A stretch of DNA of 64,000 nucleotides from Paraphysomonas bandaiensis (Eukaryota; Protista; Chrysophyceae): NCBI GenBank assembly GCA_965644295.1, contig CBFFRP010000119.1, positions 124,001 to 188,000 of the forward strand, given 5' to 3'. Both the position numbers and the translations under genes were made by a program. The notes beneath the pieces were generated by a model. The model was not told the DNA's origin and did not search any database. It saw nothing but the letters and a program-made list of their open reading frames with translations. Of this stretch, positions 5,341 through 62,327 are shown piece by piece; the stretch's first letter is position 1; each line of letters opens with the position of its first letter.

Positions 5341-5927
5341 ATATGTATGTATGTATGTATGTAGGTATGTATGTATGTAGGTATGTAGGTATGTAGGTAT
5401 GTAGGTATGTAGGTATGTAGGTATGTAGGTATGTAGGTATGTAGGTATGTATGTATGTATGTATGTATGTATGTATGTATGTATGTATGTATGTATGTAT
5501 GTATGTATGTATGTATGTATGTATGTATGTATGTATGTATGTAGGTATGTAGGTATGTAGGTATGTAGGTATGTAGGTATGTAGGTATGTAGGTATGTAG
5601 GTATGTAGGTATGTAGGTATGTAGGTATGTATGTATGTAGGTATGTATGTATGTATGTATGTATGTATGTATGTATGTATGTATGTATGTATGTATGTAT
5701 GTATGTATGTATGTATGTATGTATGTATGTATGTATGTATGTATGTATGTATGTATGTATGTATGTATGTATGTATGTATGTAGGTATGTAGGTATGTAT
5801 GTATGTATGTATGTATGTATGTATGTATGTATGTATGTATGTATGTATGTATGTATGTATGTATGTATGTATGTATGTATGTATGTATGTATGTATGTAT
5901 GTATGTATGTATGTATGTATGTATGTA
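5341..5927. repeat. (TATG)n/(TAGGTATG)n microsatellite between divergent genes
   Basis: Directly visible tandem repeat. Confidence 0.98.
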
Positions 5928-6112
5928 TTCTGTGTATGTTGTCGTTAGGGGTGGTGTTTGAAGTGGTGATAACTGCCGGGTGTTAGTTAAGGAGCATGTC
6001 ACTGCCATCCTCATGATCAGATACTGTATATCCCTCTCTGTTTTGCGAGTAACCATTCCATCTCTCTGTATTGCATAACGCTGCTTGTAGTCAGTCTGTT
6101 TACAGTTGTCTC

Positions 6113-8516: not shown

Positions 8517-8911
8517 TATATAGTAGTTTTGTTATGGTTTGTATACGACTGTACTTGATATTCATACCAAACCAGGTATAGTTCAGTACATTCAAGTACT
8601 TTCATTAGTTTCATGTAGTGTATAGTTGCATTATACTGATAGCATTTGATATATGATAGATAACCTTTAGTTGCTATACATAATCTTTTTGAGTACAGTT
8701 ACAATGAAATTTCATGGACAAACAAAGAAATCTGAAGAAAACATATTTTTATAGTATTAACAGAGAATAACATAAGTGGTACTATTATTTAACTGTCAAC
8801 AACTAGACGTTCTAAAATGGACCATATCATAAATGAATCCCATAAAGGATATGATTGTAAAAAAAATTGGTACCACCGTTACTTACTTAACGCTATTTTT
8901 GTTACGACAAA

Positions 8912-9787
8912 TGTAATAACCAGCTATCAGGTTATTCTATTCTACAAGCTCTCTATTGTATATGCTTAAGTTTGTACATACTATCTGTGCAAACATAGAT
9001 TGAATATTATTATTATTACCATAACTCACACTGAGATATATGATGTATTATGACTATGACAATTCATGCTTATTATTGATATTTACATAATCATTCAAAA
9101 GACAAAGAGAGACATGATTATCAATAATGAGACATAATGATGATACTGATGATGGATGATATATATATATGTTCTTATTATATATATATATTGACTTTAA
9201 GGCTGGAGAAGTTTACTGGAGAATTCCGGGTTTGATATCCACGCTGATAGATGTGTATTGCCAGATTATCCAGTAATACAGTTATACATTACGTATTTCC
9301 TTCAGTGCTTATTGGGGATTGATTGTACTAAGGAGTACGAATACCAGGCTTCAACTACAAAGAGAATACTGAATGTATCTTCCCTTATACAGTTGTGATG
9401 AGTTATTATGATCAACTGTGTTAGACTGATGTGTTTGGTATTGAATATGAATGATGTTCATTCCATTGATCACGGAATCGTAGGTAGACATATTTATATT
9501 ATTGATAATAAGATGCAATTTCCTTACTCTTGAAATTGCTGGTAGATAGCATTGTAGTTGTAGACATATATTTGTTCATTGTGATTTGATTATATTGTTA
9601 TTATTATGGAGGAGGAGACTCTTGATAGCGCACAAGAGTCTACTAAATTCGAGTCAGTGAGAAGGACCCTCAGGCTTATGCTTGGAGGGTTAGACCCTTC
9701 CATTGCCAATGCCAGTGAGGATCAAATCCGGGATATAGGCTTGGCATTTGGGTTGTCTGAGATCGAATCAGAGACGTTGGTGTCTCA
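8912..9787 (+). repeat. 5' LTR (876 bp)
   Basis: TGTAATAACC...GGTGTCTCA; same length as 18313-19188, no differences seen by eye. Confidence 0.97.
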
Positions 9788-12700
9788 ATTTTTTAAGGAA
9801 ATTTCATCTCTCAATAAACAAAGTGACGACTTTAGAGAGACAGAAACTCATGAAGCAGACAGTCAAGCAACGACTGTTCCAGAACTGGTGGATCGTCTTA
9901 GTAGTCCGGAGGAGGTACCCTTGTCAGCCCGAAAACCTCTCGCATTCGGTAAGGACGCTATTCAACCATTGAGGGCTCAGGATGATTTTTGTTCGTTTGA
10001 TGCAGATGCGACAGGAGATAGTCCATTGCATATGGACCCCTTGCCATTCAAGGAACAAAGTAACAAGGAGGCTGAGGCAAAGGAGTGTCATTATACACCC
10101 TTACCTCACGCAGGGGATGAGGCACACAATGTGCTACATTCCACCTCTGGATTGCAAGGTGTATATAACACCAGCAGACCAGACCAACTAGGTAGAGATG
10201 CGGATAGGTGTCAAATCTGTCAGCGACTCACAGATCCCAAGCGTCTCACCGCAGGAGGAATATGTTATTATTGCTCGGAAAATCAATGTATCGATTGTAA
10301 GGACCAGGTAAATTCAATGGAAATTCAGGGTGGTCTATGTTATCGATGCCGAGTAAGAAGGGGGATACTCAGATCAAAGAGACCCACCACAGACACATTA
10401 GAGAAGTGCATAATATTGGGCCATAGAAGATTGCGTCCTCGGCCAGACCTAAACGAGGACACATATATGGAGCATTTGTACCTGGATCGTGGGGCTAGAG
10501 ACCCTATGGACCTAAAGATTTCTCTTAACATCCTGCAACAGTACGCAGATCGACGGAGGGTACATACCACCAGATGGTCAAGACAGCGATACACCGCTCA
10601 TATAGCAGAGCCACTGCAGCATTGGGAGCAGCAGATTTACATGGCTTGTACAGCTACTGAGGTCACTGATCGTTTACAGGACCACTTTTTTGAGCAAATG
10701 AAAATAGCAAGAGAGAGTTCTGCGGAAGATATTTCTCAGCTTGCCCAACTAGTCTTAAATCGAGGAAACGGCTTGCAATTACCATCAAATGTTCGCGAGT
10801 GGTTAAGTAGGCTGACAGTTCTTGACAATGTACATGAGTTAGTGGCTGAAGAGCACATTTACGAAACAGCGGAATTGTGTATGGTGCTGAACCAATACCT
10901 TGATATAAGAGACATGGCTGAAACTATGTGGGAGGAGGCCGATAGCCAACTAATGATGCGCTGCAACCTCCTCAGCAAACAACTCAGTCAGCAAAATAAA
11001 AAATTTGGATCTTGGGAAGAGAGGACCGTTGACTCTGACGATGAGTCATACCACTCCTTCGTCAGCAATGGTAGTCGGGGTTCCTTTGTCAGCAGAGGAA
11101 GTTGGTCAGCGGATACCAGATCAAGTACATCCCGAGTGTTGAGTTCTAGGGGTTCAAGATCGAATTCCCGTATTTATCCAACTGAAGATGGCAGACTGCT
11201 AGACGCACAAGCATTCGGGTGTCACCTTCAACAAATTGGAGAGCAACACTGGTCACTGCTCTGTAACCAAATGCGATCGTCTAGAGCCATGCGGTTAATG
11301 TCTAAAGCATTGCCCAAAGCTACTCCATGGAGAAGAGAAGTCAAGGAGCCTACTCTCTACATGAAGACTGATGACAAGATGCGTCTAGAGAAAGATCATT
11401 CTAATCGATACCCCATTGAAAGAGGACTCCGTTTTGCTGTCCAGAAGGCACGTCAGGCCAAGATGGGGCTGAAAGATTTGGTCATACAGACAAAGAATGG
11501 TTGGTGTTTTAAGGGCGGCTTTAAAGAGGAACTGCAACGGTTGTCTTTGAATCGTGTGCCAGAGATATGGGATGACCAGGAGGATAGCCAATTAGCCACT
11601 GAATATGAATTTTGGATGCGTCGTTGGGTGCATTTCTGCCATTGGGCTATCCGTAATTATTGTCCCGTACAGACCAATGAACAGCGTGCCAAACAGATTG
11701 AGGACTGGGCTGCTCCTGATCTCGCTACGCCTACAGCAGTTATGCAACTATATTATGAACTAAAAGAGGTAGTTGAACATAATACGCCGGATCGCCAGAC
11801 GGCACAGGTGATGGAAGAATCTATGCGCCGAGTGGTAGGAAAAGAGCCTGTTTGGGGTAAATCGTTGGTTGCAGCGTACGACAATAAGATCACAAAAATT
11901 GAAAGGGCGAAGTCGACTGAAAATTGGAGTCTATCATGGGAGGAGGTAGAATCAATCTGGCGAGAGATTCAGGAAGAATTCCAGCAGGGAACGCTGCTAT
12001 ACATTATACGTCCTGATGTCCAATCTAGTAAACAACCAGACACAACTAAGGGTGAGGGAGGCTTACGACGACATCACAAAGTTCATGCCGGCATACGCGA
12101 GGAACCCAAACCATCTCTCACACCGATTGAGATTGCGAAGCTTACATGTTCACGATGTGGCCTTCGACATAGTATTAACAACGCTCAATGCCGACGCATC
12201 ACGAATGGGAAATTTGACCCACTTGGATTTGTGTCTGAGACACCACGTAACATTGAAAGGAATCGAATATACAATTTTTGGTTGTCCAGATTGAATAAGT
12301 ATAGCCAACCTTGGTCTCAGTTGCCTACGGCTCAGAAGGAGGAATTTCAGGCAGCATTTCGGGATTTGACTAGCCGGTGGGATGGAGGGAGTGCTTTGCA
12401 TACGACATTCATTGGTGGCGAACGGAAGAAATCCAATTCCATAGCATCAAGTGTTTCTAGTACACCACAAGTACATTGGGCGGATAGTGATGATGACTCT
12501 TCTTTCTCTACACTGGATGACTCTATACCTGCTCACAGTACAGACTCACTTTCCGGTTCACGATCTACTAAGTCAAAATCAAAACCCAAACGAAAGGTTC
12601 ATGCTGCACAAAAAGTTCGATACTTAGTGCACACTGTGACACCTAGGGATGAATCTCAAGATACATTATCCATGTTTCGTGTTCTATATGATACAGTTGA

Positions 12701-13676
12701 TGAAACTGGTAAACCAGTACAGAGAGTCGGTTGGCACCAGGTGGATCATGGCTCTATGGAGTCCTTGATCGACGAAGAGTGTGCAGCCCTCTTGAATCTT
12801 AAGCGAGTACGAATCCCAAAGAGAGACCGGTACATTATTCGGGGAATAGGTTCACAGGATATCGCTGTGAGTTGGAGAGCTTGTCTTACCTACACTGTTA
12901 CTGCACAACGGGTCTTACCTGTGGCAGTGTTGCCGGGAGAGGCACCACTTTTGAACAATGCAAAAGAACAAGTTCAGTTGAAAGCATGGATACCAATTAT
13001 CCCGAATTGTTCCATGAATGTAATCTTTGGAGGGCATGCATTACGACGTATCAAAATGATTGACTTGTTTGATCATAAACTGCTGTTGTTCCAAACTAAT
13101 GGTATTCAGTATGCAATGCCTCAATTCAACTGGAATGAGACTGTTACGCAAATGGCATCAGCTCAGGACCCTGTGGTACAGAAATGTGTTGCACGCCATC
13201 TCCGTGAAAACAAACCTCAACCTCACAAGGCTGCAGTCTGCATATCGAAACATATCCCACCGCATTCTAAGATGCGGATTCCTGTTCAAGTGGGCAAGGG
13301 TGCTCCGTTAGGTGGATGGATACAGACTCAGCCAGAGGTTGCAAGGATTAATTCAGGTGATGATGCTAATGAGCCCGTCTTACAATTTGAAGATGCTATT
13401 TGTACGGCGAACAGACCTTATATATGGGCTTCTAATCATACCGATGATTGGATCCATCTACCGGGTAGACCGCGTTTAGTTGTACGACTTCAACCCATAT
13501 TATTGGGGATGCAGGTTCATAATCAGGAGACGGTGGAATCTGCTATGAAAGGCAGTGTCGAGACGGAGGATACCACTATCATGCCTACTGATGACAAATT
13601 CCAGCATTCAGATATTTCTATGTTATCTGAAGAGAATCACGAAAATGTCACTAGGCTGGTGTCCTCATCGAAATGA
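9606..13676 (+). CDS. gag: ORF1: Gag-protease polyprotein (1356 aa)
   Basis: N-terminal Cys clusters, knuckle-like CSRCGLRHSINNAQC, aspartic-protease-like VDHGS...NVIFGGHAL, and a degenerate dUTPase-like stretch (IPPHSKMRIPV...SNHTDDWIHL). Starts inside the 5' LTR. Confidence 0.85.
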   Translation: MEEETLDSAQESTKFESVRRTLRLMLGGLDPSIANASEDQIRDIGLAFGLSEIESETLVSQFFKEISSLNKQSDDFRETETHEADSQATTVPELVDRLSSPEEVPLSARKPLAFGKDAIQPLRAQDDFCSFDADATGDSPLHMDPLPFKEQSNKEAEAKECHYTPLPHAGDEAHNVLHSTSGLQGVYNTSRPDQLGRDADRCQICQRLTDPKRLTAGGICYYCSENQCIDCKDQVNSMEIQGGLCYRCRVRRGILRSKRPTTDTLEKCIILGHRRLRPRPDLNEDTYMEHLYLDRGARDPMDLKISLNILQQYADRRRVHTTRWSRQRYTAHIAEPLQHWEQQIYMACTATEVTDRLQDHFFEQMKIARESSAEDISQLAQLVLNRGNGLQLPSNVREWLSRLTVLDNVHELVAEEHIYETAELCMVLNQYLDIRDMAETMWEEADSQLMMRCNLLSKQLSQQNKKFGSWEERTVDSDDESYHSFVSNGSRGSFVSRGSWSADTRSSTSRVLSSRGSRSNSRIYPTEDGRLLDAQAFGCHLQQIGEQHWSLLCNQMRSSRAMRLMSKALPKATPWRREVKEPTLYMKTDDKMRLEKDHSNRYPIERGLRFAVQKARQAKMGLKDLVIQTKNGWCFKGGFKEELQRLSLNRVPEIWDDQEDSQLATEYEFWMRRWVHFCHWAIRNYCPVQTNEQRAKQIEDWAAPDLATPTAVMQLYYELKEVVEHNTPDRQTAQVMEESMRRVVGKEPVWGKSLVAAYDNKITKIERAKSTENWSLSWEEVESIWREIQEEFQQGTLLYIIRPDVQSSKQPDTTKGEGGLRRHHKVHAGIREEPKPSLTPIEIAKLTCSRCGLRHSINNAQCRRITNGKFDPLGFVSETPRNIERNRIYNFWLSRLNKYSQPWSQLPTAQKEEFQAAFRDLTSRWDGGSALHTTFIGGERKKSNSIASSVSSTPQVHWADSDDDSSFSTLDDSIPAHSTDSLSGSRSTKSKSKPKRKVHAAQKVRYLVHTVTPRDESQDTLSMFRVLYDTVDETGKPVQRVGWHQVDHGSMESLIDEECAALLNLKRVRIPKRDRYIIRGIGSQDIAVSWRACLTYTVTAQRVLPVAVLPGEAPLLNNAKEQVQLKAWIPIIPNCSMNVIFGGHALRRIKMIDLFDHKLLLFQTNGIQYAMPQFNWNETVTQMASAQDPVVQKCVARHLRENKPQPHKAAVCISKHIPPHSKMRIPVQVGKGAPLGGWIQTQPEVARINSGDDANEPVLQFEDAICTANRPYIWASNHTDDWIHLPGRPRLVVRLQPILLGMQVHNQETVESAMKGSVETEDTTIMPTDDKFQHSDISMLSEENHENVTRLVSSSK

Positions 13677-16600
13677 GTTGACGGCAAAGAGGTGAATCGG
13701 CCACCTCCGGAGCCACCGCCTGTTAACATAGCCGATACGACTTCGGATTGTCCACGACCGGAGTCATTCCCTGTGGAATTATGGAATTTAGTGGATTTGT
13801 GTCAGCGAAATTCAGTTCAACCACGATTTGACAAGTACACTCCTGACCGTCTTCAAGAGTGTATTGAACTGATTTTAACTAAGCTGGATATATATAAGGA
13901 TGATGAAGCAGTCTCGTTGCAAGGGGAGATTTCTATCGACGCGGATACTATAGCTTCACATCATAATGAACGTGATTATTTTTTGGCTCAAGCTTTGGCC
14001 AATATTGATGTTTTCTGTTTTCCTGATCCCGATAACCCTCCACGGATTAAGGATTATAAAGTGAGTATTGAAACTACTGATGAAGTTCCGGTTCGGGCGC
14101 GACCTCGGAAATATTCTTTATTGCAACAAGCATTTTTAGAGGCTAAAACTGGTATGATGCTTCGTCAGAAAAAGCTTCAACCCTCAAACAGTGATTGGAG
14201 CCATGGTTTAGTTCTGGTTCCTTATCATGACCGTATTCAGAAATTTTTAGATAAATGGGGAGACACGGCACATTTAGAAATCTTCAAAAAGGTTAACTGG
14301 CCTGAAGTGGCCACATTTTTTCGGATGTGTTCAGATGTCCGATCGCTCAATCAGAAAACTAAGGTAGATATTTTTCCACTTCCCAGGATTGATGACTTGC
14401 TAGATAGCATTCCTGTGGGAACTGACCGGTTTTCAGCGGGCGATATTGCTGATGCATTTTTCTGTGTGGAGCTTGACGCTGATAGTCGATTTAAAACGGC
14501 ATTCCGCACTCATAACGCTCATTTACAGTATACGGTGATGTTACAAGGCTGGGTCAATGCACCTTCACACTTTAGTAGAGTCATTGCCCAGACTTTTGAA
14601 GACATGGATCGGTTTCAAGTCTCTGCATACCTGGACGATGTGCTTAACCATACTGGGGGTTTTCGTGCACATTTCCTGACACAGCAGTCCATATACGATA
14701 GACTTCGAAATCGTCATCTTACATTTAAAATTGAAAAGACTCATATTAATTATCGGGAGCTGCGGTTCCTTGGACATATTCTGTCCAGAAACGGCCGATG
14801 CCCTGATCCGAAGAAGGTTGAGGCGATTACAAATCTTGCAGACCCAGAGGACGTTACGGCTGTTCGATGTTTTTTAGGAAGTACTTCATTCTATCGTCAG
14901 TATATTCCTCAATACGCAGACGTTGCGTTGCCTCTGTATGACTTGACGAAGAAAAATGTCAACGTGAAGAAACTCTGGCGCCCAGAGATACACGGCCATG
15001 CCATGGAGAGGCTTAAAGAGGCGCTGCGGAAGGCTCCTGTGCTTCGTTACATTGATAATTCTAAACCGTTTGTCATTCACCTGGATGCTTCCAAGACAAA
15101 GCGTGGTATCGGTGGGGTTCTCATGCAGCATGATGACGCAGGGCAGCTCCATCCGGTGGAATATTTCAGTCGTAAGTTAACTCCTGCTGAACGAAATTAC
15201 TCGGCCACGGATTTGGAATGTAAGGCCCTCAGGGATGTTATTCTCCATTGGCATATTTATCTGAGTAGTGGTCGTAAATTTGAAGTCCACTCTGACCACA
15301 ATTGCCTGAAATATATGGTCCATTCAGTGACTGCAACACTTAATCCACGATTGCTGGGATACCTCATGGATCTTCAATCATATCGTTTTGCTTTACATTA
15401 CAAAAAAGGGGTGGAAAATGTAGTTGCTGATATGTTAAGTCGCCTTTGGCAAATAGGGGATGTACCGCCAGCTACTAGGGAGGAGCTCTCCGATCATCTC
15501 GGGCCGGTGGTTGATAATGAGGATCCAGACCTCATCCGATCATGGGGGGCTGCAAAACGACAGTTGAGTAAATTGAAACGCCAAGCGGTTGTGGAGGCGC
15601 AAACTATTAAGAAAACTCATACTTGCTCTAGCAAATTTGAGGTTCAAATCTGTAATTGTGATGCGCTGGATTTGGATTTGTTGTCTTCTTTGCCTGATGT
15701 CAAGGAAGGGGGAGTATTAGGGGAAAGTTCAGAATTAGAAAATTCTGCAGTTAGATTTAAAGTTGCTGGCTCTACATTAAAAAGAAGGAAGCAGCTTTGT
15801 ATCGATGTAGAACAATATAGTTGCCAAGTCGAGAATCTACTTAAAGAATTGAATATCACGGAAGTTCAGGAAACTGGTGAGTCAAGGATGAAATTCAGCA
15901 ATTCGGGACAGAATATACAACATGCAACTGCACACACGAACCGAACTAGCTTTCATCCATCTCGAACAAACTATATGGATAATCCAGATGAGTCAGAAGA
16001 TATGAAGTTAATTCGAGAACGACGAATTTCTGGTTACAATCAATGTACTATTCTTCCATCGACAAAGCTAAGAGCAGGATGGGGACTTTTTGCCACCAAA
16101 CAGATCTGTCCAAATGTTGAGATTTGTGATTATGTGGGTCCGGTTGTATCTGAAGGAGTGGATCAATTAAGCTCCAATTATGGGATGCAGATGATTGCTG
16201 GAGCACATCGTAAGATTGTTATTGATGGATGGGAACCTGGTTCAAGCTTAGGTCGATATGCGAATGATGGGATATCCAAACAATTGATTAATGCGAAATT
16301 GATATGGAAAAAATCTAAAGGAGTTTTGATGGCTCTTAGAGAGATCTTGCCTGGGGATGAAATATTTTTTGACTATGGTAAAGAATTTTGGAGTACTAGA
16401 AGTGATCAACTTAGTCCAGAAGATAATCAAATTCTGAATTTAGATGGATCTCGACGGAAGACTACCGTGTCTTTTAAAGATGAATTTGAGTTAATTGTGT
16501 ACGATCAAAAACGGAAAGTTCAGGAGAAACTATATTCCAAAATCTTTAAGTACAGCGATGAAGAAAATTCCAGAATACAGGAACTTGTTGAGATGGAGGA

Positions 16601-18257
16601 ACGAAATACTAGGAATTTCGAGAGAACTCTCCGATATCTAGAAACCGACGCTTTGGAGAAGTACTCTTATGAGAACCTAGTACAATGCCAATCACTTGCT
16701 GACGAATTGCAATATCTGGTAGGCAGAAAGTATATTGATGACGATAATTTCCAAAAATATGAGATTGCTTCAATACATTATGATGAAATGCATAAGTTAG
16801 TGGTTGGTCATAGGAGGCCTTTGTCAGGGAAATTGGATAGATATGATACTCACCCATTCGCCGTATGTGGAAAATCTGGATTATGGGAGTTATCAGATCA
16901 ATATTTATTAGATCATCCGGAAGAAGATCCGGAGATTAAGTGGCCTTCGAGTAGAGAGAGTATGTTTCAGATCCAAGAAAATGATACTCAACTTGGATTG
17001 ATTATATCACAGTTATCAAATTTTGAAACTGGCCATGAGTTAGAAGTGGATGGTCATGTTTACAAGTTACATGAGAATGCAGATGAACCATCGCACAAGA
17101 CACTATTGAGAAAACATGTTCAGAAAAACAAGGGATCAATAGATTGGCAAATTATGGTCCCTCAGGTGTTACGTTTTCAACTAATGAAGTATTTCCATGA
17201 AGGATATACGCATCCAGGAACACAACGAATGCTTGAAACTTTGAAATTGAGATATTTTTGGCCGTCAATACGCAAGGATGTACAGAAACATGTGGAGGAA
17301 TGTATACCTTGTAAATTACGTAAGACCTATCAAACGCGACCAAAGATTCCAATAATGAAATACCCTGATGCAAAATTTCCTTTGTCACGAATACATATTG
17401 ATTTAACAGGAAGATTGGTGAAAACCAAAAGTGGTTTCAGTTATATTCTAGTGGTAAAGGATTTCCTTACTAAATTTGTTTGGCTTATGCCTCTTAAGAA
17501 CAAGACGCCTTTGGAAGTGGCTAATGCTTTGATTACTCATGTGTTTTGTCCATTTGGGTTACCAGAATTACTGGTGAGTGATAAAGGCACAGAGTTTGTC
17601 AATAAACTGACCAAAGCAATATCCAAGTTATTCAAGTATAGAAGGATTAACACTACTCCTTATACTCCAAGGAGCCAGGGTTTAGTTGAGAATCACAACA
17701 AGACGTTGAAGGATCAGTTGTACCATTTTGTAGGTGTATTACAGGATGACTGGGATACATTTTTGCCTACAGTACAATTGATGTATAATACTACAGTGTC
17801 CTCGAGCACAAGTTTTACTCCATATTATATGATGTTCGGTAGAGAATGCCGTTTACCATCTATAGAGTTTACATTGTCCTCGAAACTTTCCGAGCTTCGA
17901 TTACAACCTGGAACTATTGAAGCTGAATGGATAGATAAATTGTTGATTTCTTTGGAACAAGCTTGGAATTATGCAACGAAGAAGGCTCAAAAGAATCATC
18001 TTCGACATAATATAGTATCTAGGCGACCTCGAGAGTTCAAAGAATATAATGCTGGTGACTTATTCTTCAGAATTCGACGTCCAATTAATGTGTTTAAATC
18101 GGCTGATGATGAGGAATTGTATAAAATCAATGCCAAATTACAAGCTAGATTTGAAGGACCTTATAAAGTTATTCGGCGACTAAGTCCAATACTTTATGAT
18201 GCTGAAATTGAAGGAAAAGAGGTTCGAATAAATGCTACTAATATGAAGCCATTTTAG
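13677..18257 (+). CDS. pol: ORF2: Pol (RT, RNase H, SET domain, integrase), in frame with ORF1 after one TGA
   Basis: RT: FPLPRIDDLL, QGWVNAP, YLDD (14628-14639), FLGH. RNase H: LDAS, YFSRKL, SDH, ADMLSR. SET at 16044-16391. IN: H-H-C-C finger, IHIDL / SDKGTEF / GLVE catalytic triad, GPY motif. Confidence 0.95.
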   Translation, partial: VDGKEVNRPPPEPPPVNIADTTSDCPRPESFPVELWNLVDLCQRNSVQPRFDKYTPDRLQECIELILTKLDIYKDDEAVSLQGEISIDADTIASHHNERDYFLAQALANIDVFCFPDPDNPPRIKDYKVSIETTDEVPVRARPRKYSLLQQAFLEAKTGMMLRQKKLQPSNSDWSHGLVLVPYHDRIQKFLDKWGDTAHLEIFKKVNWPEVATFFRMCSDVRSLNQKTKVDIFPLPRIDDLLDSIPVGTDRFSAGDIADAFFCVELDADSRFKTAFRTHNAHLQYTVMLQGWVNAPSHFSRVIAQTFEDMDRFQVSAYLDDVLNHTGGFRAHFLTQQSIYDRLRNRHLTFKIEKTHINYRELRFLGHILSRNGRCPDPKKVEAITNLADPEDVTAVRCFLGSTSFYRQYIPQYADVALPLYDLTKKNVNVKKLWRPEIHGHAMERLKEALRKAPVLRYIDNSKPFVIHLDASKTKRGIGGVLMQHDDAGQLHPVEYFSRKLTPAERNYSATDLECKALRDVILHWHIYLSSGRKFEVHSDHNCLKYMVHSVTATLNPRLLGYLMDLQSYRFALHYKKGVENVVADMLSRLWQIGDVPPATREELSDHLGPVVDNEDPDLIRSWGAAKRQLSKLKRQAVVEAQTIKKTHTCSSKFEVQICNCDALDLDLLSSLPDVKEGGVLGESSELENSAVRFKVAGSTLKRRKQLCIDVEQYSCQVENLLKELNITEVQETGESRMKFSNSGQNIQHATAHTNRTSFHPSRTNYMDNPDESEDMKLIRERRISGYNQCTILPSTKLRAGWGLFATKQICPNVEICDYVGPVVSEGVDQLSSNYGMQMIAGAHRKIVIDGWEPGSSLGRYANDGISKQLINAKLIWKKSKGVLMALREILPGDEIFFDYGKEFWSTRSDQLSPEDNQILNLDGSRRKTTVSFKDEFELIVYDQKRKVQEKLYSKIFKYSDEENSRIQELVEMEERNTRNFERTLRYLETDALEKYSYENLVQCQSLADELQYLVGRKYIDDDNFQKYEIASIHYDEMHKLVVGHRRPLSGKLDRYDTHPFAVCGKSGLWELSDQYLLDHPEEDPEIKWPSSRESMFQIQENDTQLGLIISQLSNFETGHELEVDGHVYKLHENADEPSHKTLLRKHVQKNKGSIDWQIMVPQVLRFQLMKYFHEGYTHPGTQRMLETLKLRYFWPSIRKDVQKHVEECIPCKLRKTYQTRPKIPIMKYPDAKFPLSRIHIDLTGRLVKTKSGFSYILVVKDFLTKFVWLMPLKNKTPLEVANALITHVFCPFGLPELLVSDKGTEFVNKLTKAISKLFKYRRINTTPYTPRSQGLVENHNKTLKDQLYHFVGVLQDDWDTFLPTVQLMYNTTVSSSTSFTPYYMMFGRECRLPSIEFTLSSKLSELRLQPGTIEAEWIDKLLISLEQAWNYATKKAQKNHLRHNIVSRRPREFKEYNAGDLFFRIRRPINVFKSADDEELYKINAKLQARFEGPYKVIRRLSPILYDAEIEGKEVRINATNMKPF
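16044..16391 (+). other. SET lysine-methyltransferase domain embedded in Pol
   Basis: GWGLFATKQI, EICDYVG, IDG, LGRYAND..N and ALREILPGDEIFFDYGKEFW correspond to SET motifs I-IV. Confidence 0.9.
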
Positions 18258-18312
18258 GTTCGCAGTGAACTTCGTTCCGCATACTGGCGTATGCGACTGC
18301 TGGAGGGGGTAG

Positions 18313-19188
18313 TGTAATAACCAGCTATCAGGTTATTCTATTCTACAAGCTCTCTATTGTATATGCTTAAGTTTGTACATACTATCTGTGCAAACATAGA
18401 TTGAATATTATTATTATTACCATAACTCACACTGAGATATATGATGTATTATGACTATGACAATTCATGCTTATTATTGATATTTACATAATCATTCAAA
18501 AGACAAAGAGAGACATGATTATCAATAATGAGACATAATGATGATACTGATGATGGATGATATATATATATGTTCTTATTATATATATATATTGACTTTA
18601 AGGCTGGAGAAGTTTACTGGAGAATTCCGGGTTTGATATCCACGCTGATAGATGTGTATTGCCAGATTATCCAGTAATACAGTTATACATTACGTATTTC
18701 CTTCAGTGCTTATTGGGGATTGATTGTACTAAGGAGTACGAATACCAGGCTTCAACTACAAAGAGAATACTGAATGTATCTTCCCTTATACAGTTGTGAT
18801 GAGTTATTATGATCAACTGTGTTAGACTGATGTGTTTGGTATTGAATATGAATGATGTTCATTCCATTGATCACGGAATCGTAGGTAGACATATTTATAT
18901 TATTGATAATAAGATGCAATTTCCTTACTCTTGAAATTGCTGGTAGATAGCATTGTAGTTGTAGACATATATTTGTTCATTGTGATTTGATTATATTGTT
19001 ATTATTATGGAGGAGGAGACTCTTGATAGCGCACAAGAGTCTACTAAATTCGAGTCAGTGAGAAGGACCCTCAGGCTTATGCTTGGAGGGTTAGACCCTT
19101 CCATTGCCAATGCCAGTGAGGATCAAATCCGGGATATAGGCTTGGCATTTGGGTTGTCTGAGATCGAATCAGAGACGTTGGTGTCTCA
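18313..19188 (+). repeat. 3' LTR (876 bp), carrying a copy of the first ~60 gag codons
   Basis: Matches the 5' LTR. ORF 19007-19231 is the gag start reading into flanking DNA. Confidence 0.97.
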
Positions 19189-19642
19189 CAAACAGTTTTT
19201 AGACAATGTCATATATATTGCTTCTACTTAAGTAAATAATATAATATACTTCATACATGTGCTGTACTACTCGTCTGTTTATCAATATTATGTCGTATGT
19301 CGTAAATATCTTGAATAACCCTTTATCTGAATTCACAAAATCAACCACTATTAATCTTTTTCATAGCATCATATAAATCAACATAGCCTAGTAAACATCG
19401 CCATCAACAGGGTAATGTATAGGTCTATAAGTCGTATGTTCAATCCTTCTACCTTCTATTAGTCTGACACTATCTGCGGTACTATAGGTGTTTAGAAGTT
19501 GGAAGAGTGTTTCACATGTTAATAATTTCACTCCACACTGAAGTAGCCGTTAATATGCAAATGTTAATAAACGATGTTGGTAAATTACTATAATCGGTTA
19601 CTGCAGTAGTTGTTAGTAAAATAATCAGTTTGTAATTTGTAA

Positions 19643-21754: not shown

Positions 21755-22342
21755 TGTATATGTATGTATGTATGTATGCATGTATGTATGTATGTATGTA
21801 TGTATGTATGTATGTATGTATGTATGTATGTATGTATGTATGTATGTATGTATGTATGTATGTATGTATGTATGTATGTATGTATGTATGTATGTATGTA
21901 TGTATGTATGTATGTATGTATGTATGTATGTATGTATGTATGTATGTATGTATGTATGTATGTATGTATGTATGTATGTATGTATGTATGTATGTATGTA
22001 TGTATGTATGTATGTATGTATGTATGTATGTATGTATGTATGTATGTATGTATGTATGTATGTATGTATGTATGTATGTATGTATGTATGAATGTATGTA
22101 TGTATGTAAGTAAGTATATATGTATGTATGTATGTACGTATGTATGTATGTATGTATGTATGTATGTATGTATGTATGTATGCATGTATGTATGTATGTA
22201 TGTATGTATGTATGTATGTATGTATGTATGTATGTATGTATGTATGTATGTATGTATGTATGTATGTATGTATGTATGTATGTATGTATGTATGTATGTA
22301 TGTATGTATGTATGTATGTATGTATGTATGTATGTATGTATG

Positions 22343-22373
<31 letters not shown>

Positions 22374-23275
22374 GTAAGTATATATGTATGTGTGTATGTA
22401 TGTATGTATGTATGTATGTATGTATGTATGTATGTATGTATGTATGTATGTATGTATGTATGTATGTATGTATGTATGTATGTATGTATGTATGTATGTA
22501 TGTATGTATGTATGTATGTATGTATGTATGTATGTATGTATGTATGTATGTATGTATGTATGTATGTATGTATGTATGTATGTATGTATGTATGTATGTA
22601 TGTATGTATGTATGTATGTATGTATGTATGTATGTATGTATGTATGTATGTATGAATGTATGTATGTATGTATGTAAGTAAGTATATATGTATGTATCCA
22701 TAGCACAACTTAAGAATATATATAGTAGCTATACATGCATATGTACACATACATATAAACGCTGCATACACATATAACTCCGTATATAATAAATAAAAAC
22801 ACCATTACCGCACAGCCAGACAACTACCTGTTGCTCTCAGTGAACTCAGAGAGCTTCTCCTGCAACTCGGTTCCCTACAAAGGTAAGTATATGAGTCCCA
22901 GATCACCTCACACCGCAATCACCACACCTTTGAATCAACCAGAAACCTGATAATAACCTCACACAGAGACCGCACCTGAGCCTCAGTGAGAGAGTTTAGA
23001 TTGGATAAATCCTGAGAAAGTATGTCGTCCATGTTTCCTGGGTCCGCGATGGTAATATAGATATATGATAACAACACCATCATACAACATACACACCATC
23101 ATATACACTGCAGTAGTTATGTATATGTATGTATGTATGTATGCATGTATGTATGTATGTATGTATGTATGTATGTATGTATGTATGTATGTATGTATGT
23201 ATGTATGTATGTATGTATGTATGTATGTATGTATGTATGTATGTATGTATGTATGTATGTATGTATGTATGTATG

Positions 23276-23306
<31 letters not shown>

Positions 23307-23695
23307 GTATGTATGTATGTATGTATGTATGTATGTATGTATGTATGTATGTATGTATGTATGTATGTATGTATGTATGTATGTATGTATGTATGTATGT
23401 ATGTATGTATGTATGTATGTATGTATGTATGTATGTATGTATGTATGTATGTATGTATGTATGTATGTATGAATGAATGTATGTATGTATGTAAGTAAGT
23501 ATATATGTATGTATGTATGTACGTATGTATGTATGTATGTATGTATGTATGTATGTATGTATGTATGTATGTATGTATGTATGTATGTATGTATGTATGT
23601 ATGTATGTATGTATGTATGTATGTATGTATGTATGTATGTATGTATGTATGTATGTATGTATGTATGTATGTATGTATGTATGTATGTATGTATG

Positions 23696-23726
<31 letters not shown>

Positions 23727-23983
23727 GTAAGTATATATGTATGTGTGTATGTATGTATGTATGTATGTATGTATGTATGTATGTATGTATGTATGTATGT
23801 ATGTATGTATGTATGTATGTATGTATGTATGTATGTATGTATGTAGGTAGGTAGGTAGGTAGGTAGGTAGGTAGGTAGGTAGGTAGGTAGGTAGGTATGT
23901 ATGTATGTATGTATGTAGGTAGGTATGTATGTATGTATGTATGTATGTATGTATGTATGTATGTATGTATGTATGTATGTATG

Positions 23984-24014
<31 letters not shown>

Positions 24015-24267
24015 GTAAGTATATATGTATGTATGTATGTACGTATGTATGTATGTATGTATGTATGTATGTATGTATGTATGTATGTATGTATGTATGT
24101 ATGTATGTATGTATGTATGTATGTATGTATGTATGTATGTATGTATGTATGTATGTATGTATGTATGTATGTATGTATGTATGTATGTATGTATGTATGT
24201 ATGTATGTATGTATGTATGTATGTATGTATGTATGTATGTATGTATGTATGTATGTATGTATGTATG

Positions 24268-24298
<31 letters not shown>

Positions 24299-24629
24299 GT
24301 AAGTATATATGTATGTGTGTATGTATGTATGTATGTATGTATGTATGTATGTATGTATGTATGTATGTATGTATGTATGTATGTATGTATGTATGTATGT
24401 ATGTATGTATGTATGTATGTATGTATGTATGTATGTATGTATGTATGTATGTATGTATGTATGTATGTATGTATGTATGTGTATGTATGTATGTATGTAT
24501 GTATGTATGTATGTATGTATGTATGTATGTATGTATGTATGTATGTATGTATGTATGTATGTATGTATGTATGTATGTATGTATGTATGTATGTATGTAT
24601 GTATGTATGTATGTATGTATGTATGTATG

Positions 24630-24660
<31 letters not shown>

Positions 24661-24869
24661 GTAAGTATATATGTATGTATGTATGTTCGTATGTATGTAT
24701 GTATGTATGTATGTATGTATGTATGTATGTATGTATGTATGTATGTATGTATGTATGTATGTATGTATGTATGTATGTATGTATGTATGTATGTATGTAT
24801 GTATGTATGTATGTATGTATGTATGTATGTATGTATGTATGTATGTATGTATGTATGTATGTATGTATG

Positions 24870-24900
<31 letters not shown>

Positions 24901-25101
24901 GTAAGTATATATGTATGTATGTATGTACGTATGTATGTACGTATGTCTGTATGTATGTATGTATGTATGTATGTATGTATGTATGTATGTATGTATGTAT
25001 GTATGTATGTATGTATGTATGTATGTATGTATGTATGTATGTATGTATGTATGTATGTATGTATGTATGCATGTATGTATGTATGTATGTATGTATGTAT
25101 G

Positions 25102-25132
<31 letters not shown>

Positions 25133-25429
25133 GTAAGTATATATGTATGTGTGTATGTACGTATGTATGTATGTATGTATGTATGTATGTATGTATGTAT
25201 GTATGTATGTATGTATGTATGTATGTATGTATGTATGTATGTATGTATGTATGTATGTATGTATGTATGTATGTATGTATGTATGTATGTATGTATGTAT
25301 GTATGTATGTATGTATGTATGTATGTATGTATGTATGTATGTATGTATGTATGTATGTATGTATGTATGTATGTATGTATGTATGTATGTATGTATGTAT
25401 GTATGTATGTATGTATGTATGTATGTATG

Positions 25430-25460
<31 letters not shown>

Positions 25461-25609
25461 GTATGTATGTATGTATGTATGTATGTATGTATGTATGTAT
25501 GTATGTATGTATGTATGTATGTATGTATGTATGTATGTATGTATGTATGTATGTATGTATGTATGTATGTATGTATGTATGTATGTATGTATGTATGTAT
25601 GTATGTATG

Positions 25610-25640
<31 letters not shown>

Positions 25641-25791
25641 GTAAGTATATATGTATGTGTGTATGTATGTATGTATGTATGTATGTATGTATGTATGTAT
25701 GTATGTATGTATGTATGTATGTATGTATGTATGTATGTATGTATGTATGTATGTATGTATGTATGTATGTATGTATGTATGTATGTATGTA
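21755..25791. repeat. Very long (TATG)n array with recurring GTAAGTAAGTATATATG interruptions, split by a duplicated unique segment
   Basis: Directly visible. Confidence 0.97.
22696..23120 (-). repeat. Tandem duplicate of 21331-21755 (5' exons of COMMD7), period 1365 bp
   Basis: Same sequence ATCCATAGCACAACTTAAG...CTGCAGTAGTTATG at both positions. Confidence 0.92.
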
Positions 25792-25884
25792 TCTAGATGA
25801 TGTTGGGTTATGTTTGGTATAGTTGTGTTCTGCTGTCAGTTTCTTTATCGTACTCTGTTTATTCAGATATTATCTAATACTTAA

Positions 25885-30856: not shown

Positions 30857-31168
30857 TACACATACATACACACATACATACATACATACATACATACATA
30901 CATACATACATACATACATACATACATACATACATACATACATACATACATACATACATACATACATACATACATACATACATACATACATACATACATA
31001 CATACATACATACATACATACATACATACATACATACATACATACATACATACATACATACATACATACATACATACATACATACATACATACATACATG
31101 CATACATACATACATACATACATACATACATACATGCATACATACATACATACATACATACACACACA
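30857..31168. repeat. (CATA)n microsatellite between divergent genes
   Basis: Directly visible. Confidence 0.98.
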
Positions 31169-36203: not shown

Positions 36204-37922
36204 CTAGTTCTTACATAGTACAACTGAAGCGTTAACGTGGCAGATAATATATTCGGATTTGGGCGATAAATAGGGTCGCGTTCTTGGAGATATAACAAAA
36301 AAATCTGCCCCTACTTCATTGGAGTATTCAACCAAGGATCTAGCCACACTGTTGCCCGCTGAACAAATTACAGTCTTGAATCGACTATTTGCAGGGCCTA
36401 TGTGTTCTAATTCTTTCTCATAGAACTCCTCTATCTCTTCAGGTGGGGGTTCGCACCCAGAACCCGTCTTTCGGGGATTGTACACATTTACCACATGCAA
36501 AATGTCCCTAGGGTTGATGATCGTCATCGCTAAGTCAAAACCTCTTTTCGAAAGAGGGGATCCATCGACAGCAACAACGAATACTCTTGAAGAAGGGGGA
36601 CAGAGAGACTTACATATTACAATCGGCATATGACAATTCCGTAATGCAAGATCCGTAAAACTTCCTACACTTGTTTCGTCCACCTTGCGTCCTTTGCGAC
36701 CGACGTACCCGCAAAATAAGAGATGTGGCTCTTGTCTTGTCACAGTTGCAGTTTTAGCCCCCCTGTATTCTAACAACATATCCATTAACACCTCCCTCGA
36801 AGCTCTCCCGCGTCTGTCTTCCCAATAAAGAGCAAATCGACTGACAGGGACGCGATACGTAGCAATGAGTTCTGCCTCATAATGTTCCTGGATAAAATCT
36901 GGCTCGTAATGGGTTGGAAGAGATGAACTGTGTGATTTAGTATATGCATGCATCAAACACACATGATCTAGGCGTTTACGGAGACGCATCATAGTTCGAA
37001 AAGCAGTATCTGCTCCTTCACTCCCATCAACACAACAAAGAAGAGTCATGGCATTCTTGGTGCGTATTTTATCAACTGTGTCTACACACAGCTTTCGAAA
37101 CTCAGCTTCTTCATCCACATAAGAATTAACCACTCGAAAAGACCCCTTCTTAGAGTTCGAATAATCTGTTTCCAATCCAATCTTCCGCAGTATAGCGGGC
37201 TCCTTCTCCTGCAGAACATCAACGAACTCATTCTCTAAATCTTCTGGAGGAGCTTTCGTGTTCTTCAGTCGAATGAACTCCTAAACACATTCATACATTA
37301 ACGCATACTCACACTGTGACTGAAATAGGCGCACCTCAGCGAACAGGGCGGCTATCTCTCGTCTATACTTGGCCTGAACGACAGCGTCAAGATGATATTC
37401 GTTTAAAGAGGCCGCACTCCCCATTCTATTAAATCCGTATCTGATGGAATTATCCGGCACTCCCACGGGATACTTTACATTACGATATAAGATACGCAGC
37501 TGTCGCTACTCTCCAATATAGCAACATACAATAAAGAAGCTAAAGACAGCAATATACATACATGTACTACGACCTCCCTACACATACATACATACATACA
37601 TACATACATACATACATACATACATACATACATACATACATACATACATACATACATACATACATACATACATACATACATACATACATACATACATACA
37701 TACATACATACATACATACATACATACATACATACATACATACATACATACATACATACATACATACATACATACATACATTGCGCTTGAATTGCACTTA
37801 CAAGTCTTCCAATAAGTGTCCATTGGTGCGGGAGGGAATCTGAGAGGGCTCTTTGCTGGAACGAATGGAATTATTTTATCCCCATATGCCTCTAAAAATT
37901 TTTTGACCTGATTTAGTCTCAT
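36204..37922 (-). CDS. Tandem universal stress protein (USP) domain protein, ~3 exons
   Basis: Two USP signatures: LLCCVDGSEGAD...GSFTDLALRNCHMPIVICK and VVAVDGSPLSKRGFD...SEYIICHVNASVVLCK. 5' exons are tentative. Confidence 0.8.
37578..37781. repeat. (CATA)n microsatellite in the predicted first intron of the USP gene
   Basis: Directly visible. Confidence 0.97.
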
Positions 37923-42554: not shown

Positions 42555-42735
42555 ACACATACATACATACATACATACATACATACATACATACATACAT
42601 ACATACATACATACATACATACATACATACATACATACATACATACATACATACATACATACATACATACATACATACATACATACATACATACATACAT
42701 ACATACATACATACATACATACATACATACATACA

Positions 42736-42769
<34 letters not shown>

Positions 42770-43305
42770 CATACGTACATACATACATACATACATACAT
42801 ACATACATACATACATACATACATACATACATACATACATACATACATACATACGTACATACATACATACATACATACATACATACATACATACATACAT
42901 ACATACATACATACATACATACATACATACATACATACATACATACGTACATACATACATACATACATACATACATACATACATACATACATACATACAT
43001 ACATACATACATACATACATACATACATACATACATACATACATACATACACACATGCATACATACATACATACATACATGCATACATACATACATACAT
43101 ACATACATACATACATACATACATACATACATACATACATACATACATACATACATACATACATACATGCATACATACATACATACATGCATACATACAT
43201 ACATACATACATACATACATACATACATACATACATACATACATACATGCATACATACATACATACATGCATACATACATACATACATACATGCATACAT
43301 ACATA
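42555..43305. repeat. (CATA)n microsatellite just upstream of RPN3
   Basis: Directly visible; begins ~60 bp upstream of the ATG. Confidence 0.98.
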
Positions 43306-45139: not shown

Positions 45140-46249
45140 CTATATGCTACATATATGCAAACACTTCCATATTAAGAAAAACCTACCACAGTCATCATTT
45201 GACGGACTGAGCCGTGTCTTGTACTGATAAGCGCATAATGTCGTTGTGCACGCCGCGGTACTTTTTTGAATCATTTTATGTACCTCAGCCGACACATCTA
45301 CGACACTCCCAGAAATACGCCTACTACAGATATACTCCTTCAGTACTTTTCCTTCCACTGCACAGTCGTAACAGCAGTCTAACCAATCAACACCCGCATA
45401 TTCATGATGGTAAGCAGATGGACGTGCCACTGTGTTGAAGTAAAACATCTGTTCCCAGTGCTGTCGATGGTCATAATCTCTCTGTTCATGATGTGTCGTG
45501 ACAACTAATCGACACTCTGTCGTAGTTGGAGGCCCCCAAACAGGTAAGAACAGTTTTCCATCAAGATACCTCGTCACCCCTTCTGTCCACGGCAAGCGAA
45601 ACTTTAACATACTAGCAGCAGGCTTCATTATTAAATGCCATCGCATCTGCATATTCATGTCTTGGGCAATTTCGGATTCTAACACAGAATTCCCAACACA
45701 GGACCACTCTGCTGATCTAATATCACTAATAAATAGTACCTCTTTCTCTCTAAATGTTTCAGCAATAGAGTCCGTCATCAACTCTTGCCTAATTTCGATA
45801 CTTCCACGAATGTTCTCACATCGAAAATTTCGAGGGTCAATAAGAATGAAAGTTAGATTAGGAAAAAGCTCACTCAAATATGTGATATGATAGCCTGGTG
45901 CTGCACCGGCATAAACGCATATCTGTTTCTGACTATCGTTACGAGCATACTCTGTGAGAAACTCCACCTCGCTGATAAGAAGCTTACGTTGTCCCCAGTG
46001 CACAAGTGACTTCACCTCTCCTCTGCGTCTGCGGTAAATGAGTCTCGGGCTGTCCGGTGACAGTGTCCGCTGTAGTGATGATTCGTCCAGTAGAGGGACA
46101 GAATCGGCGCATATCTGACGCAGATGAGGGTTGTGCACAGGGACGGCTCGTGGTTCTCCAGCGTCACTCTGAACCCATAGAGGGGACACAGACGATGACG
46201 AACACGTGAAACACACGCGCTTTTTCTTAACTGACCTGCTATCTGACAT
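45140..46249 (-). CDS. Cap-specific mRNA (nucleoside-2'-O)-methyltransferase, poxvirus VP39-like family
   Basis: HWGQRKLLISEVEFL, VYAGAAPGYH, LIDP, FISDIRS, SMLKFRLPW, PVWGPPTTTECRL (K-D-K-E tetrad). Confidence 0.88.
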   Translation of the reverse strand: MSDSRSVKKKRVCFTCSSSSVSPLWVQSDAGEPRAVPVHNPHLRQICADSVPLLDESSLQRTLSPDSPRLIYRRRRGEVKSLVHWGQRKLLISEVEFLTEYARNDSQKQICVYAGAAPGYHITYLSELFPNLTFILIDPRNFRCENIRGSIEIRQELMTDSIAETFREKEVLFISDIRSAEWSCVGNSVLESEIAQDMNMQMRWHLIMKPAASMLKFRLPWTEGVTRYLDGKLFLPVWGPPTTTECRLVVTTHHEQRDYDHRQHWEQMFYFNTVARPSAYHHEYAGVDWLDCCYDCAVEGKVLKEYICSRRISGSVVDVSAEVHKMIQKSTAACTTTLCAYQYKTRLSPSNDDCGRFFLIWKCLHICSI

Positions 46250-46404
46250 GATAAGCAAACTACTGTATGAAACACTCAACGAAAAAGGATGACCACTCTG
46301 AGAGAGTCTGATGCTTTATAACACTCTGATGTTCACATATAATTGCATGATAGTCTATTGGCAAATCACATGAAGCCATGAGGAATAAGGACATTACTAT
46401 TGGA

Positions 46405-46622
46405 CATACATACATACATACATACATACCTACCTACCTACCTACCTACCTACCTACCTACATACATACATACATACATACATACATACATACATACATA
46501 CATACATACATACATACATACATACATACATACATACCTACCTACCTACCTACCTACATACATACATACATACATACATACATACATACATACATACATA
46601 CATACATACATACATACATACA

Positions 46623-46652
<30 letters not shown>
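46405..46652. repeat. (CATA)n/(CCTA)n microsatellite between divergent genes
   Basis: Directly visible. Confidence 0.98.
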
Positions 46653-60303: not shown

Positions 60304-60389
60304 GTACAGCAGAACAGCAGGCCCTACTGCTGTATATGCATCATTGTTCTAGATTATATTATTAGAATACAGCTGCTCATCCGTATAGT

Positions 60390-61830: not shown

Positions 61831-62327
61831 CAGTCACAGCATATACTACACAAAAATATATGTTCACTGTATTTGATGCCAAGTTAATGCCAACTCTTAA
61901 AGTAGGGATACTACGCATCTAGTGGATATATATGTGACGGATTATAGCGGAATTGTGTATTGTGTATTTTAATGCCGTTTACACCGTTCGCATACACAAT
62001 CCGGTACTATTTCGATTTACAGAATTGAGGGTATAGTTCATAATCGGAATTTCTTATTAACATTGAGAAAACATAAGTACTGGTTCTGTTTTTACTATTG
62101 GCATTGGCACTATATAATACAAACAGACAAGCAGTACTTAAAAGTAACCGAAAGGCTTTTTTGGAGCAAGGTACTCATTCGAATTCAATTGCATAGTCAA
62201 TGCATTAAGGGCTTATGCAATAAAAAGAGTATCATTCAATGCCTTGCTTTATGCCCTATGGTTGTCCCAGGTTTCTTCAGAAAGAGTTAGAGTTCTAGAA
62301 TTCTCATTGCTATATCGAGAAGAATAT

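Follow-up and report, generated by a model that had tools for sequence, protein, structure and literature searches.

A SET domain between RNase H and integrase in the Pol polyprotein of a recently mobile Ty3/Gypsy retrotransposon of Paraphysomonas bandaiensis

Introduction

The stretch of 64,000 nucleotides analysed here (positions 124,001 to 188,000 of contig CBFFRP010000119.1, forward strand, from the chrysophyte Paraphysomonas bandaiensis; hereafter, the window) contains at 8912-19188 one intact copy of a Ty3/Gypsy long terminal repeat (LTR) retrotransposon, which is autonomous and currently or very recently active. The Pol polyprotein of this element carries a SET domain of the protein-lysine methyltransferase type, located between RNase H (RH) and integrase (IN) and followed by a small SH3-like barrel. 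As judged from comparison with related sequences, the SET domain and the barrel have long been part of Pol throughout a Gypsy clade and are maintained by purifying selection.

Retrotransposons that carry chromatin readers (chromodomains, PHD, MBD) are known, as are DNA methyltransferases in two lineages of these elements. A histone-methyltransferase-type domain that appears to be under purifying selection in the Pol of an active LTR element would add the histone code to the potential targets of mobile elements. Moreover, this is a young and intact multi-copy family, in which it becomes testable whether a transposon places marks at the sites where it inserts.

Identity of the SET domain and of the downstream barrel

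Profile matches and the predicted fold agree on the presence of a SET domain. The Pfam SET family matches pol residues 796-896 with 31.0 bits, against a cut-off of 22.4, and the excised insert alone (interval 16044-16391) with 33.2 bits. When compared with the sequences of the PDB, the SET sequence alone finds EZH2 and EHMT2 at about 2e-5, and a profile built from 18 clade members finds EZH2 (1e-9) and EHMT2 (3.5e-8), followed by SET8/KMT5A, SET1/MLL and NSD. In an AlphaFold model of the SET domain and the downstream module, with a mean predicted local distance difference test score (pLDDT) of 68, the SET core reaches 70-90, and a Foldseek search with this model retrieves SET7/9, MLL1, PRDM5, SETD8, G9a and PRDM9 with probability 1.00 and E values of ~1e-6 to 1e-5. 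The initial annotation of the window, made from the letters and their translations, had placed a SET domain between RNase H and integrase and had proposed a profile search and a structure prediction as checks. Both returned significant matches, and the homology to SET domains, as read from the profiles and the model, is regarded as real.

The module at 16032-16400 contains the motifs GYN, GWG, C.Y.G, RYAND, NAK and GDEIFFDYG..FW. The Tyr of FDY, which occupies the catalytic position, is pol residue 895 (16374-16376) and, together with the preceding G.E, is invariant in every covering row of the 18-sequence alignment, while the GxG and YxG motifs and the catalytic Tyr are kept across the clade. 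The motif strings quoted in the initial annotation are present in the pol translation, and its assignment of SET motifs I-IV holds for GWG, C.Y.G and the Tyr of FFDY, but not for the NH of motif III, where Asp replaces His (or the pair reads QD). Many stand-alone SET proteins of short length, which bear the signatures GR(Y/F)xND..N(A)K and YG..YW, have the ND variant as well; being common to a broad SET subfamily, it marks this subfamily and not decay. Cys-rich pre-SET or post-SET clusters, the lack of which had also been pointed out, are not found in the translated pol.

The PRDM2_PR model of Pfam does not pass its cut-off in the window copy and passes only in two other families of the same genome (families B and C, see below). 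The profile match to the vSET protein of PBCV-1 (1n3j) is confined to the last 30 residues, and a lead in a protein atlas to a Nucleocytoviricota SET cluster scored 0.89, under the trusted level; kinship with bacterial or chlorovirus minimal SET domains is weakly suggested by sequence. The nearest atlas clusters are SET proteins, with Bacillariophyta as their commonest phylum (a lead only), and the nearest non-element matches to the SET domain in a HMMER scan are short unnamed fragments.

The second module, located downstream of the SET domain (16638-16958), is predicted to consist of a helix, a five-stranded small SH3-like barrel and a C-terminal helix when folded alone from 26 sequences (pLDDT 82). 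A Foldseek search with this module gave nothing significant. With VIA-align, CAP-Gly reached a Z score of 5.6 and Tudor one of 4.7, and the chromo-barrel and the PHF20L1 Tudor domain scored 4.0-4.2. These scores lie below the level of kinship and are compatible with a common SH3-like arrangement and, therefore, no family was assigned to the barrel. That it could act as a methyl-lysine reader is put forward as a hypothesis only.

Structure of the element

The element has the organization of the Ty3/Gypsy group (Metaviridae): reverse transcriptase (RT), RH and IN follow one another in this order, a protease region lies upstream in the first open reading frame (ORF1), and the H2C2 zinc finger and the rve core are both present. 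It is bounded by direct LTRs that run TG..CA and by a target-site duplication of 4 bp, with a polypurine tract ahead of the 3' LTR. The features are as follows, with window coordinates and strand.

8908-8911, no strand: left copy of the target-site duplication (CAAA), repeated after the 3' LTR
8912-9787, +: 5' LTR, 876 bp, TG..CA; 100% identical to 18313-19188 (blastn self-comparison)
9606-13676, +: ORF1, gag-pro, 1356 residues (ORF listing and translation; protease region aligned with that of the relative P0007)
13674-13676, +: single in-frame TGA separating gag-pro and pol, candidate readthrough site; ORF1 and pol are in the same frame
13692-18257, +: Pol ORF, 1521 codons, uninterrupted (ORF listing, translation, Pfam)
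14319-14783, +: reverse transcriptase RVT_1 with YLDD, pol residues 210-364 (Pfam, 67.8 bits)
14991-15383, +: RNase H (RT_RNaseH / RT_RNaseH_2), pol residues 434-564 (Pfam, ~97 bits)
15444-16031, +: variable linker, weakly conserved (17-20% identity among relatives)
16032-16400, +: SET domain module (Pfam SET, PDB profile matches, predicted fold)
16638-16958, +: conserved post-SET module, predicted helix and small SH3-like beta-barrel (conserved in 26 sequences; without a Pfam family)
17157-17327, +: integrase H2C2 zinc finger (Integrase_H2C2), pol residues 1156-1212 (Pfam, 61.5 bits)
17379-17669, +: integrase catalytic core (rve), pol residues 1230-1326 (Pfam, 36 bits)
18302-18312, +: polypurine tract GGAGGGGGTAG, directly 5' of the 3' LTR (sequence)
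18313-19188, +: 3' LTR, 876 bp (blastn self-comparison)
19189-19192, no strand: target-site duplication, right copy (CAAA) (sequence)

The order within Pol is RT, RNase H, variable linker, SET, short linker, SH3-like barrel, about 50 residues and integrase. The distance from RNase H to the integrase zinc finger is ~590 residues in this element and ~45 in the second Gypsy found in the window (51426-55295); the long insert that had been claimed stands, with these values in place of the earlier ~565 and ~20. The earlier description of an uninterrupted ORF applies to pol, with its 1521 open codons, but not to gag-pro and pol as a single frame, which are separated by the TGA. The identical LTRs and the intact duplication were found as described, with the 876 bp of both repeats matching at 100% and CAAA on both sides. 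A chromodomain (PF00385) was not found in Pol with Pfam, and the C-terminus of the integrase gives weak matches to SH3_Tf2-1 and Integrase_p58_C only.

The ATG of ORF1 (9606) and its first 61 codons are located inside the LTR and are repeated in the 3' LTR (9606-9787 and 19007-19188). The primer-binding position after 9787 is ORF1 coding sequence, the first bases of which are not TGG. The active-site motif of the protease is D-H-G in the window family (12744-12752) and DTG (P0002) or DSG (P0007) in relatives, and the family transposed recently despite this D-H-G motif. The same-frame layout of gag-pro and pol with one TGA is also found in metagenome relatives and is a candidate for programmed readthrough.

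Copies and mobility in the genome

The genome searched comprises 62.6 Mb in 669 contigs. The family of the window element (family A) is represented by eight full-length copies with 97-100% nucleotide identity, in addition to fragments, two copies that run off the end of a contig, and numerous LTRs that are solo or older (79-91%). The six copies checked, i.e., that of the window and five others, occupy different loci, and each is flanked by its own perfect 4-bp duplication (CAAA, AATA, CTAG, AGTC, TTTT and ATAT). These private duplications at six loci indicate that the SET-bearing element integrated repeatedly and recently and, together with the close identity of the eight copies, they bear out the earlier proposal that it moved recently with SET on board.

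A second family of the same genome, family B (contigs C476, C339, C463, C661, C654 and C656), has the same RT-RH-SET-IN order. Its insert is 34-40% identical to that of the window element, and its SET domain reaches 44-51 bits with Pfam SET, in addition to the PRDM2_PR match.

SET domains are also found in family C, which comprises dozens of giant LINE-like (long interspersed nuclear element-like) copies with the order SET-Exo_endo_phos-RT and ORFs of 2200-3700 residues (C440:3000-12999, C426:346500-356499, C644:1-10000 and about 60 further loci). The family C SET passes PRDM2_PR, shares the signatures NDP..N.K and YG..YW with the SET of the Gypsy clade, and matches the profile of the latter with a hhalign probability of 97% (E 5e-11); no detectable closeness was found between the endonuclease domains of family C and those of the SET-Gypsy clade. 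In the copies on C644 and C566, the open frame also contains a second, weaker SET match, located ~4 kb upstream of the first.

Relatives and phylogeny of the clade

Relatives with the same architecture, for which the initial annotation had recommended a search together with an RT phylogeny, are numerous. A HMMER scan of 1.84 billion representative proteins with a profile of SET plus the downstream module gave 32 clusters at E <=1e-30, including Pol proteins of 1432-2549 residues. A search with RT-RH gave ~66 clusters with 49-61% RT identity, all of them from metagenome or run assemblies; with local hidden Markov models (HMMs), 62 of these clusters were found to carry SET and the downstream module, whereas the others are truncated sequences, of which three retain SET. 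Thus, every relative in this identity range that is of sufficient length carries SET and barrel, and no SET was found with the local HMMs in relatives at <=41% RT identity. A word-indexed protein search with the SET insert gave two relatives, a figure that reflects the limit of its sensitivity and not rarity. Nearly all relatives are unnamed metagenome proteins. One partial member bears the label Symbiodinium microadriaticum, which is distrusted as host, with contamination being possible.

In a tree of RT-RH with 55 rows, inferred with IQ-TREE in quick mode, a branch with a Shimodaira-Hasegawa-like approximate likelihood ratio support of 96 separates the 32 SET carriers from all other rows, so that the presence of SET requires one change on the tree. 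With family B and at least 62 clusters in one RT clade, the SET domain is, as far as the phylogeny tells, a single clade-wide acquisition and not a private capture. The sister group (P0261, P0269 and P0272) has an RH-IN spacer of 410-640 residues, in which no degenerate SET is detectable, and the barrel is weakly recognisable in these SET-free sisters (P0272, E 6e-5; P0261, E 0.03). These long spacers and the weak barrel suggest, with moderate confidence, that a single insertion brought SET into a lineage in which a long pre-integrase region already existed.

In the majority of the SET-Gypsy relatives (P0007, P0010, P0187-P0237), Exo_endo_phos is also present between protease and RT; this domain of the AP-endonuclease type is typical of LINEs and unusual in LTR elements. 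Family A and its nearest relatives (P0182-P0186) are without an Exo_endo_phos match, and no remnant of it was found in the window element with Pfam and by alignment to P0007. Several of the relatives that bear this domain are misnamed exodeoxyribonuclease III by their source.

The element stretch or part of it (query of 4901 letters) was found in 20 public runs from 17 studies, which include marine, seawater, hydrocarbon and hydrothermal-vent metagenomes, as well as runs labelled with three organisms. Contigs of three marine metatranscriptomes match at 99-100%, among them 16189-16378 and 15963-16226, which lie wholly or partly within the SET module, 16808-17103, which covers the barrel, and 17484-17800, located in the integrase. 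Members of the clade are widespread in marine metagenomes and also occur in metatranscriptomes, and the clade may matter for the genome evolution of major primary producers.

Selection on the SET module

The amino acid identity between the window copy and six diverged relatives is distributed along Pol as follows.

RT: 36-59%
RNase H: 44-54%
Integrase core: 45-56%
SET: 36-40%
Post-SET module: 38-46%
Three linkers: 13-26%

In family B, the SET domains of C476 and C661 differ by 15 synonymous and 3 non-synonymous changes (dS 0.19), which corresponds to a ratio of non-synonymous to synonymous substitution rates (dN/dS) of 0.05, and those of C476 and C339 by 10 synonymous changes and 1 non-synonymous change (dN/dS 0.03). 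The values are 0.02 for the post-SET module and 0.06 for the integrase of the same family. In this codon comparison, C476 against C654 was saturated at synonymous sites, and C463, which ends inside SET, was left out. The dN/dS check that had been proposed thus points to purifying selection on SET in family B, and the possibility raised at the outset, that SET might be present in a single, neutrally evolving copy, is countered by these values and by the clade-wide retention of the domain. In family A, the SET domains show 0-2 changes per pair (1-2 non-synonymous and 0-1 synonymous), too few for dN/dS to be informative.

Possible functions of the SET module

The element is interpreted here as an active SET-bearing Gypsy in which the SET domain acts as a methyltransferase around integration, an interpretation that, taken as a whole, is considered probable with some reserve. 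The SET-barrel module would be made as part of Pol and, since it adjoins the integrase zinc finger, would probably stay with the integrase as an N-terminal extension or travel in the same particle. There, it could act as an S-adenosylmethionine (SAM)-dependent protein-lysine methyltransferase during or after integration, with nucleosomal histones at the target or the new insertion, or a protein of the element or the host, as substrate. Once the SET homology is taken as settled, activity as a lysine methyltransferase seems rather probable, and a histone as the substrate would be a plausible, if somewhat doubtful, choice. A more far-reaching proposal is tentative: the clade would encode an active histone-lysine methyltransferase joined via a reader-like barrel to the N-terminus of the integrase, the intasome would mark nucleosomes at the integration site, either shielding new copies from silencing or limiting itself, and SET would have been exchanged between, or recurrently recruited by, classes of retrotransposons.

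Several points weigh against a methyltransferase acting around integration. Motif III reads RYAND and not the canonical NH, with ND or QD being universal in the clade. Family B matches PRDM2_PR, and PR/SET-like domains are often inactive. Moreover, the SET-I insert is modelled at low confidence, and the dN/dS of family A itself is uninformative. Contigs from RNA libraries can contain DNA and, thus, the metatranscriptome matches indicate presence only and not full-length transcription. Finally, catalysis, substrate and the physical linkage to the integrase are inferred, and this linkage, which depends on the cleavage sites of the protease, is a guess.

A catalytically inactive SET could instead serve as a peptide-binding or tethering module that binds the tail of a histone or a chromatin protein of the host and steers the integrase to particular chromatin, as the chromodomains of chromoviruses do. 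The clade-wide replacement of NH by ND or QD would suit such a role, as would the PRDM2_PR matches of families B and C and the location of the module directly upstream of the integrase, beside a barrel with a weak resemblance to readers of the Tudor and chromo-barrel types. However, a pure binding module would not need the catalytic Tyr, the GxG and the YxG that are kept across the clade, and the ND variant, being common to small stand-alone SET proteins, is not a sign of decay. This alternative is held to be unlikely.

A further proposal, considered more unlikely still, is that the protein methylated by SET is not a histone but, for example, Gag, RT or IN of the element or a restriction or silencing factor of the host, with an effect on the replication cycle rather than on chromatin. 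SET7/9 and SETD8, both of which have non-histone substrates, are among the best fold matches, and Pol contains neither pre-/post-SET Zn clusters nor other chromatin-targeting Pfam domains. Nevertheless, the profiles put histone methyltransferases first (EZH2, EHMT2, SET8), the location beside the integrase suits an action at the target site, and the proposal is a variant of the methyltransferase interpretation and not an exclusive rival to it.

That SET is a passenger, i.e., a captured host fragment carried neutrally without function for the element, would agree with the few and mostly non-synonymous SET substitutions of family A, but is very improbable, as the domain is retained in at least 62 diverged clusters of one RT clade, has kept 36-40% identity while the flanking linkers drifted to 13-26%, evolves with the low dN/dS given above for family B, and has invariant catalytic motifs.

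Relation to known systems

No description of a SET domain in the Pol of an LTR/Gypsy retrotransposon was found in the searchable literature, with Repbase, Dfam, GyDB and REXdb lying outside the search; the earlier remark, which left room for prior reports, that no characterised LTR clade with an RT-RH-SET-IN architecture is known agrees with this result, transposon catalogues aside. Grau-Bové et al. listed 823 gene models of chromatin-transposon fusions in 172 genomes, in which SET methyltransferases are named; only two diatoms were sampled, and the text discusses only SETMAR among the SET fusions (10.1101/2021.11.30.470311). Among the rows of the fusion table examined, there are 10 SET rows, including SMYD-like/RVT_2, SETDB1 with THAP or DDE_Tnp_4, and SETMAR, and in none of these 10 does SET adjoin RNase H or integrase (10.1101/2021.11.30.470311).

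The closest parallel in design is offered by the chromoviruses (MAGGY, Tf1), which likewise have a Ty3/Gypsy Pol with a chromatin-type module attached to the integrase, on a backbone of protease (PR), RT, RH and IN with an H2C2 zinc finger, an rve core and a Tf2-1-like SH3 tail. The chromodomain of MAGGY targets H3K9me regions, as cited in 10.1101/2021.11.30.470311. The window element differs from chromoviruses in that its module has the fold of a writer (SET) with an unassigned barrel and lies N-terminal to the integrase, whereas the chromodomain is C-terminal.

Retrotransposons of dinoflagellates and charophytes captured DNA cytosine methyltransferases (PMC5890265), and an arthropod Copia carries MBD (PMC6673714). 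In these cases, as in the window element, an epigenetic component of the host was taken into the coding capacity of a retrotransposon; the component there is a DNA C5-methyltransferase or a methyl-CpG reader, in contrast to the protein-lysine methyltransferase-type SET found here, and the host group and the element lineage are also different. In SETMAR, which is listed as a SET-transposon fusion in the table rows examined (10.1101/2021.11.30.470311), SET and a transposon-derived DDE-type enzyme are likewise combined in one protein. However, SETMAR is a domesticated gene of the host, present in single copy, that joins Pre-SET and SET to a DNA transposase, whereas the SET domain of the window belongs to a multi-copy mobile LTR element.

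The GyDi elements, a Ty3/Gypsy lineage of diatoms, form a diatom-specific RT cluster and have the typical order PR, RT, RH, IN (PMC2806351). No accessory domain is mentioned for GyDi in this source (PMC2806351); the difference from the SET clade concerns the published description and not the sequence, and GyDi may or may not belong to this clade.

Among SET proteins, the small ND-type proteins, the PRDM family and vSET share with the window element a minimal SET core without Cys-rich pre-/post-SET regions, and the motifs GR(Y/F)xND..N(A)K and G(D/E)E(I/V)..YG..YW recur in many proteins of 130-250 residues. Unlike the domain described here, which lies inside a retrotransposon Pol, these are stand-alone or zinc-finger-linked cellular or viral proteins, and the C2H2 zinc-finger arrays of the PRDM family are absent from the window element.

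Other features of the window and the genome

The second Gypsy of the window (51426-56259) is an ordinary element without SET, and its RT is highly diverged in the RT tree, with a branch length of 3.7 changes per column. Long microsatellites of the type (TATG)n / (ACAT)n are found at 21759-25792, 5342-5928, 30860-31166, 37582-37781, 42557-43305 and 46404-46652; the first of these, of ~4 kb, lies directly downstream of the SET element, and the microsatellites create spurious long ORFs on both strands. A tandem array of ~1.4 kb at 60389-61831 has nested periods of 23, 50 and 73 bp, with copies that match at 85-87%.

An ORF on the reverse strand (45140-46276) matches PARP_regulatory, the poxvirus VP39-type poly(A) polymerase regulatory subunit / cap 2'-O-methyltransferase, with 82.8 bits, and beside it an ORF at 46901-48058 combines a 3'-5' exonuclease with BRCT. 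Elsewhere in the genome, the silicon-transporter family (PF03842), which points to a host among the diatoms or other silicifying stramenopiles, is found above the Pfam cut-off at no fewer than seven loci (at least one on each of contigs C348, C406, C398, C150, C149, C298 and C405).

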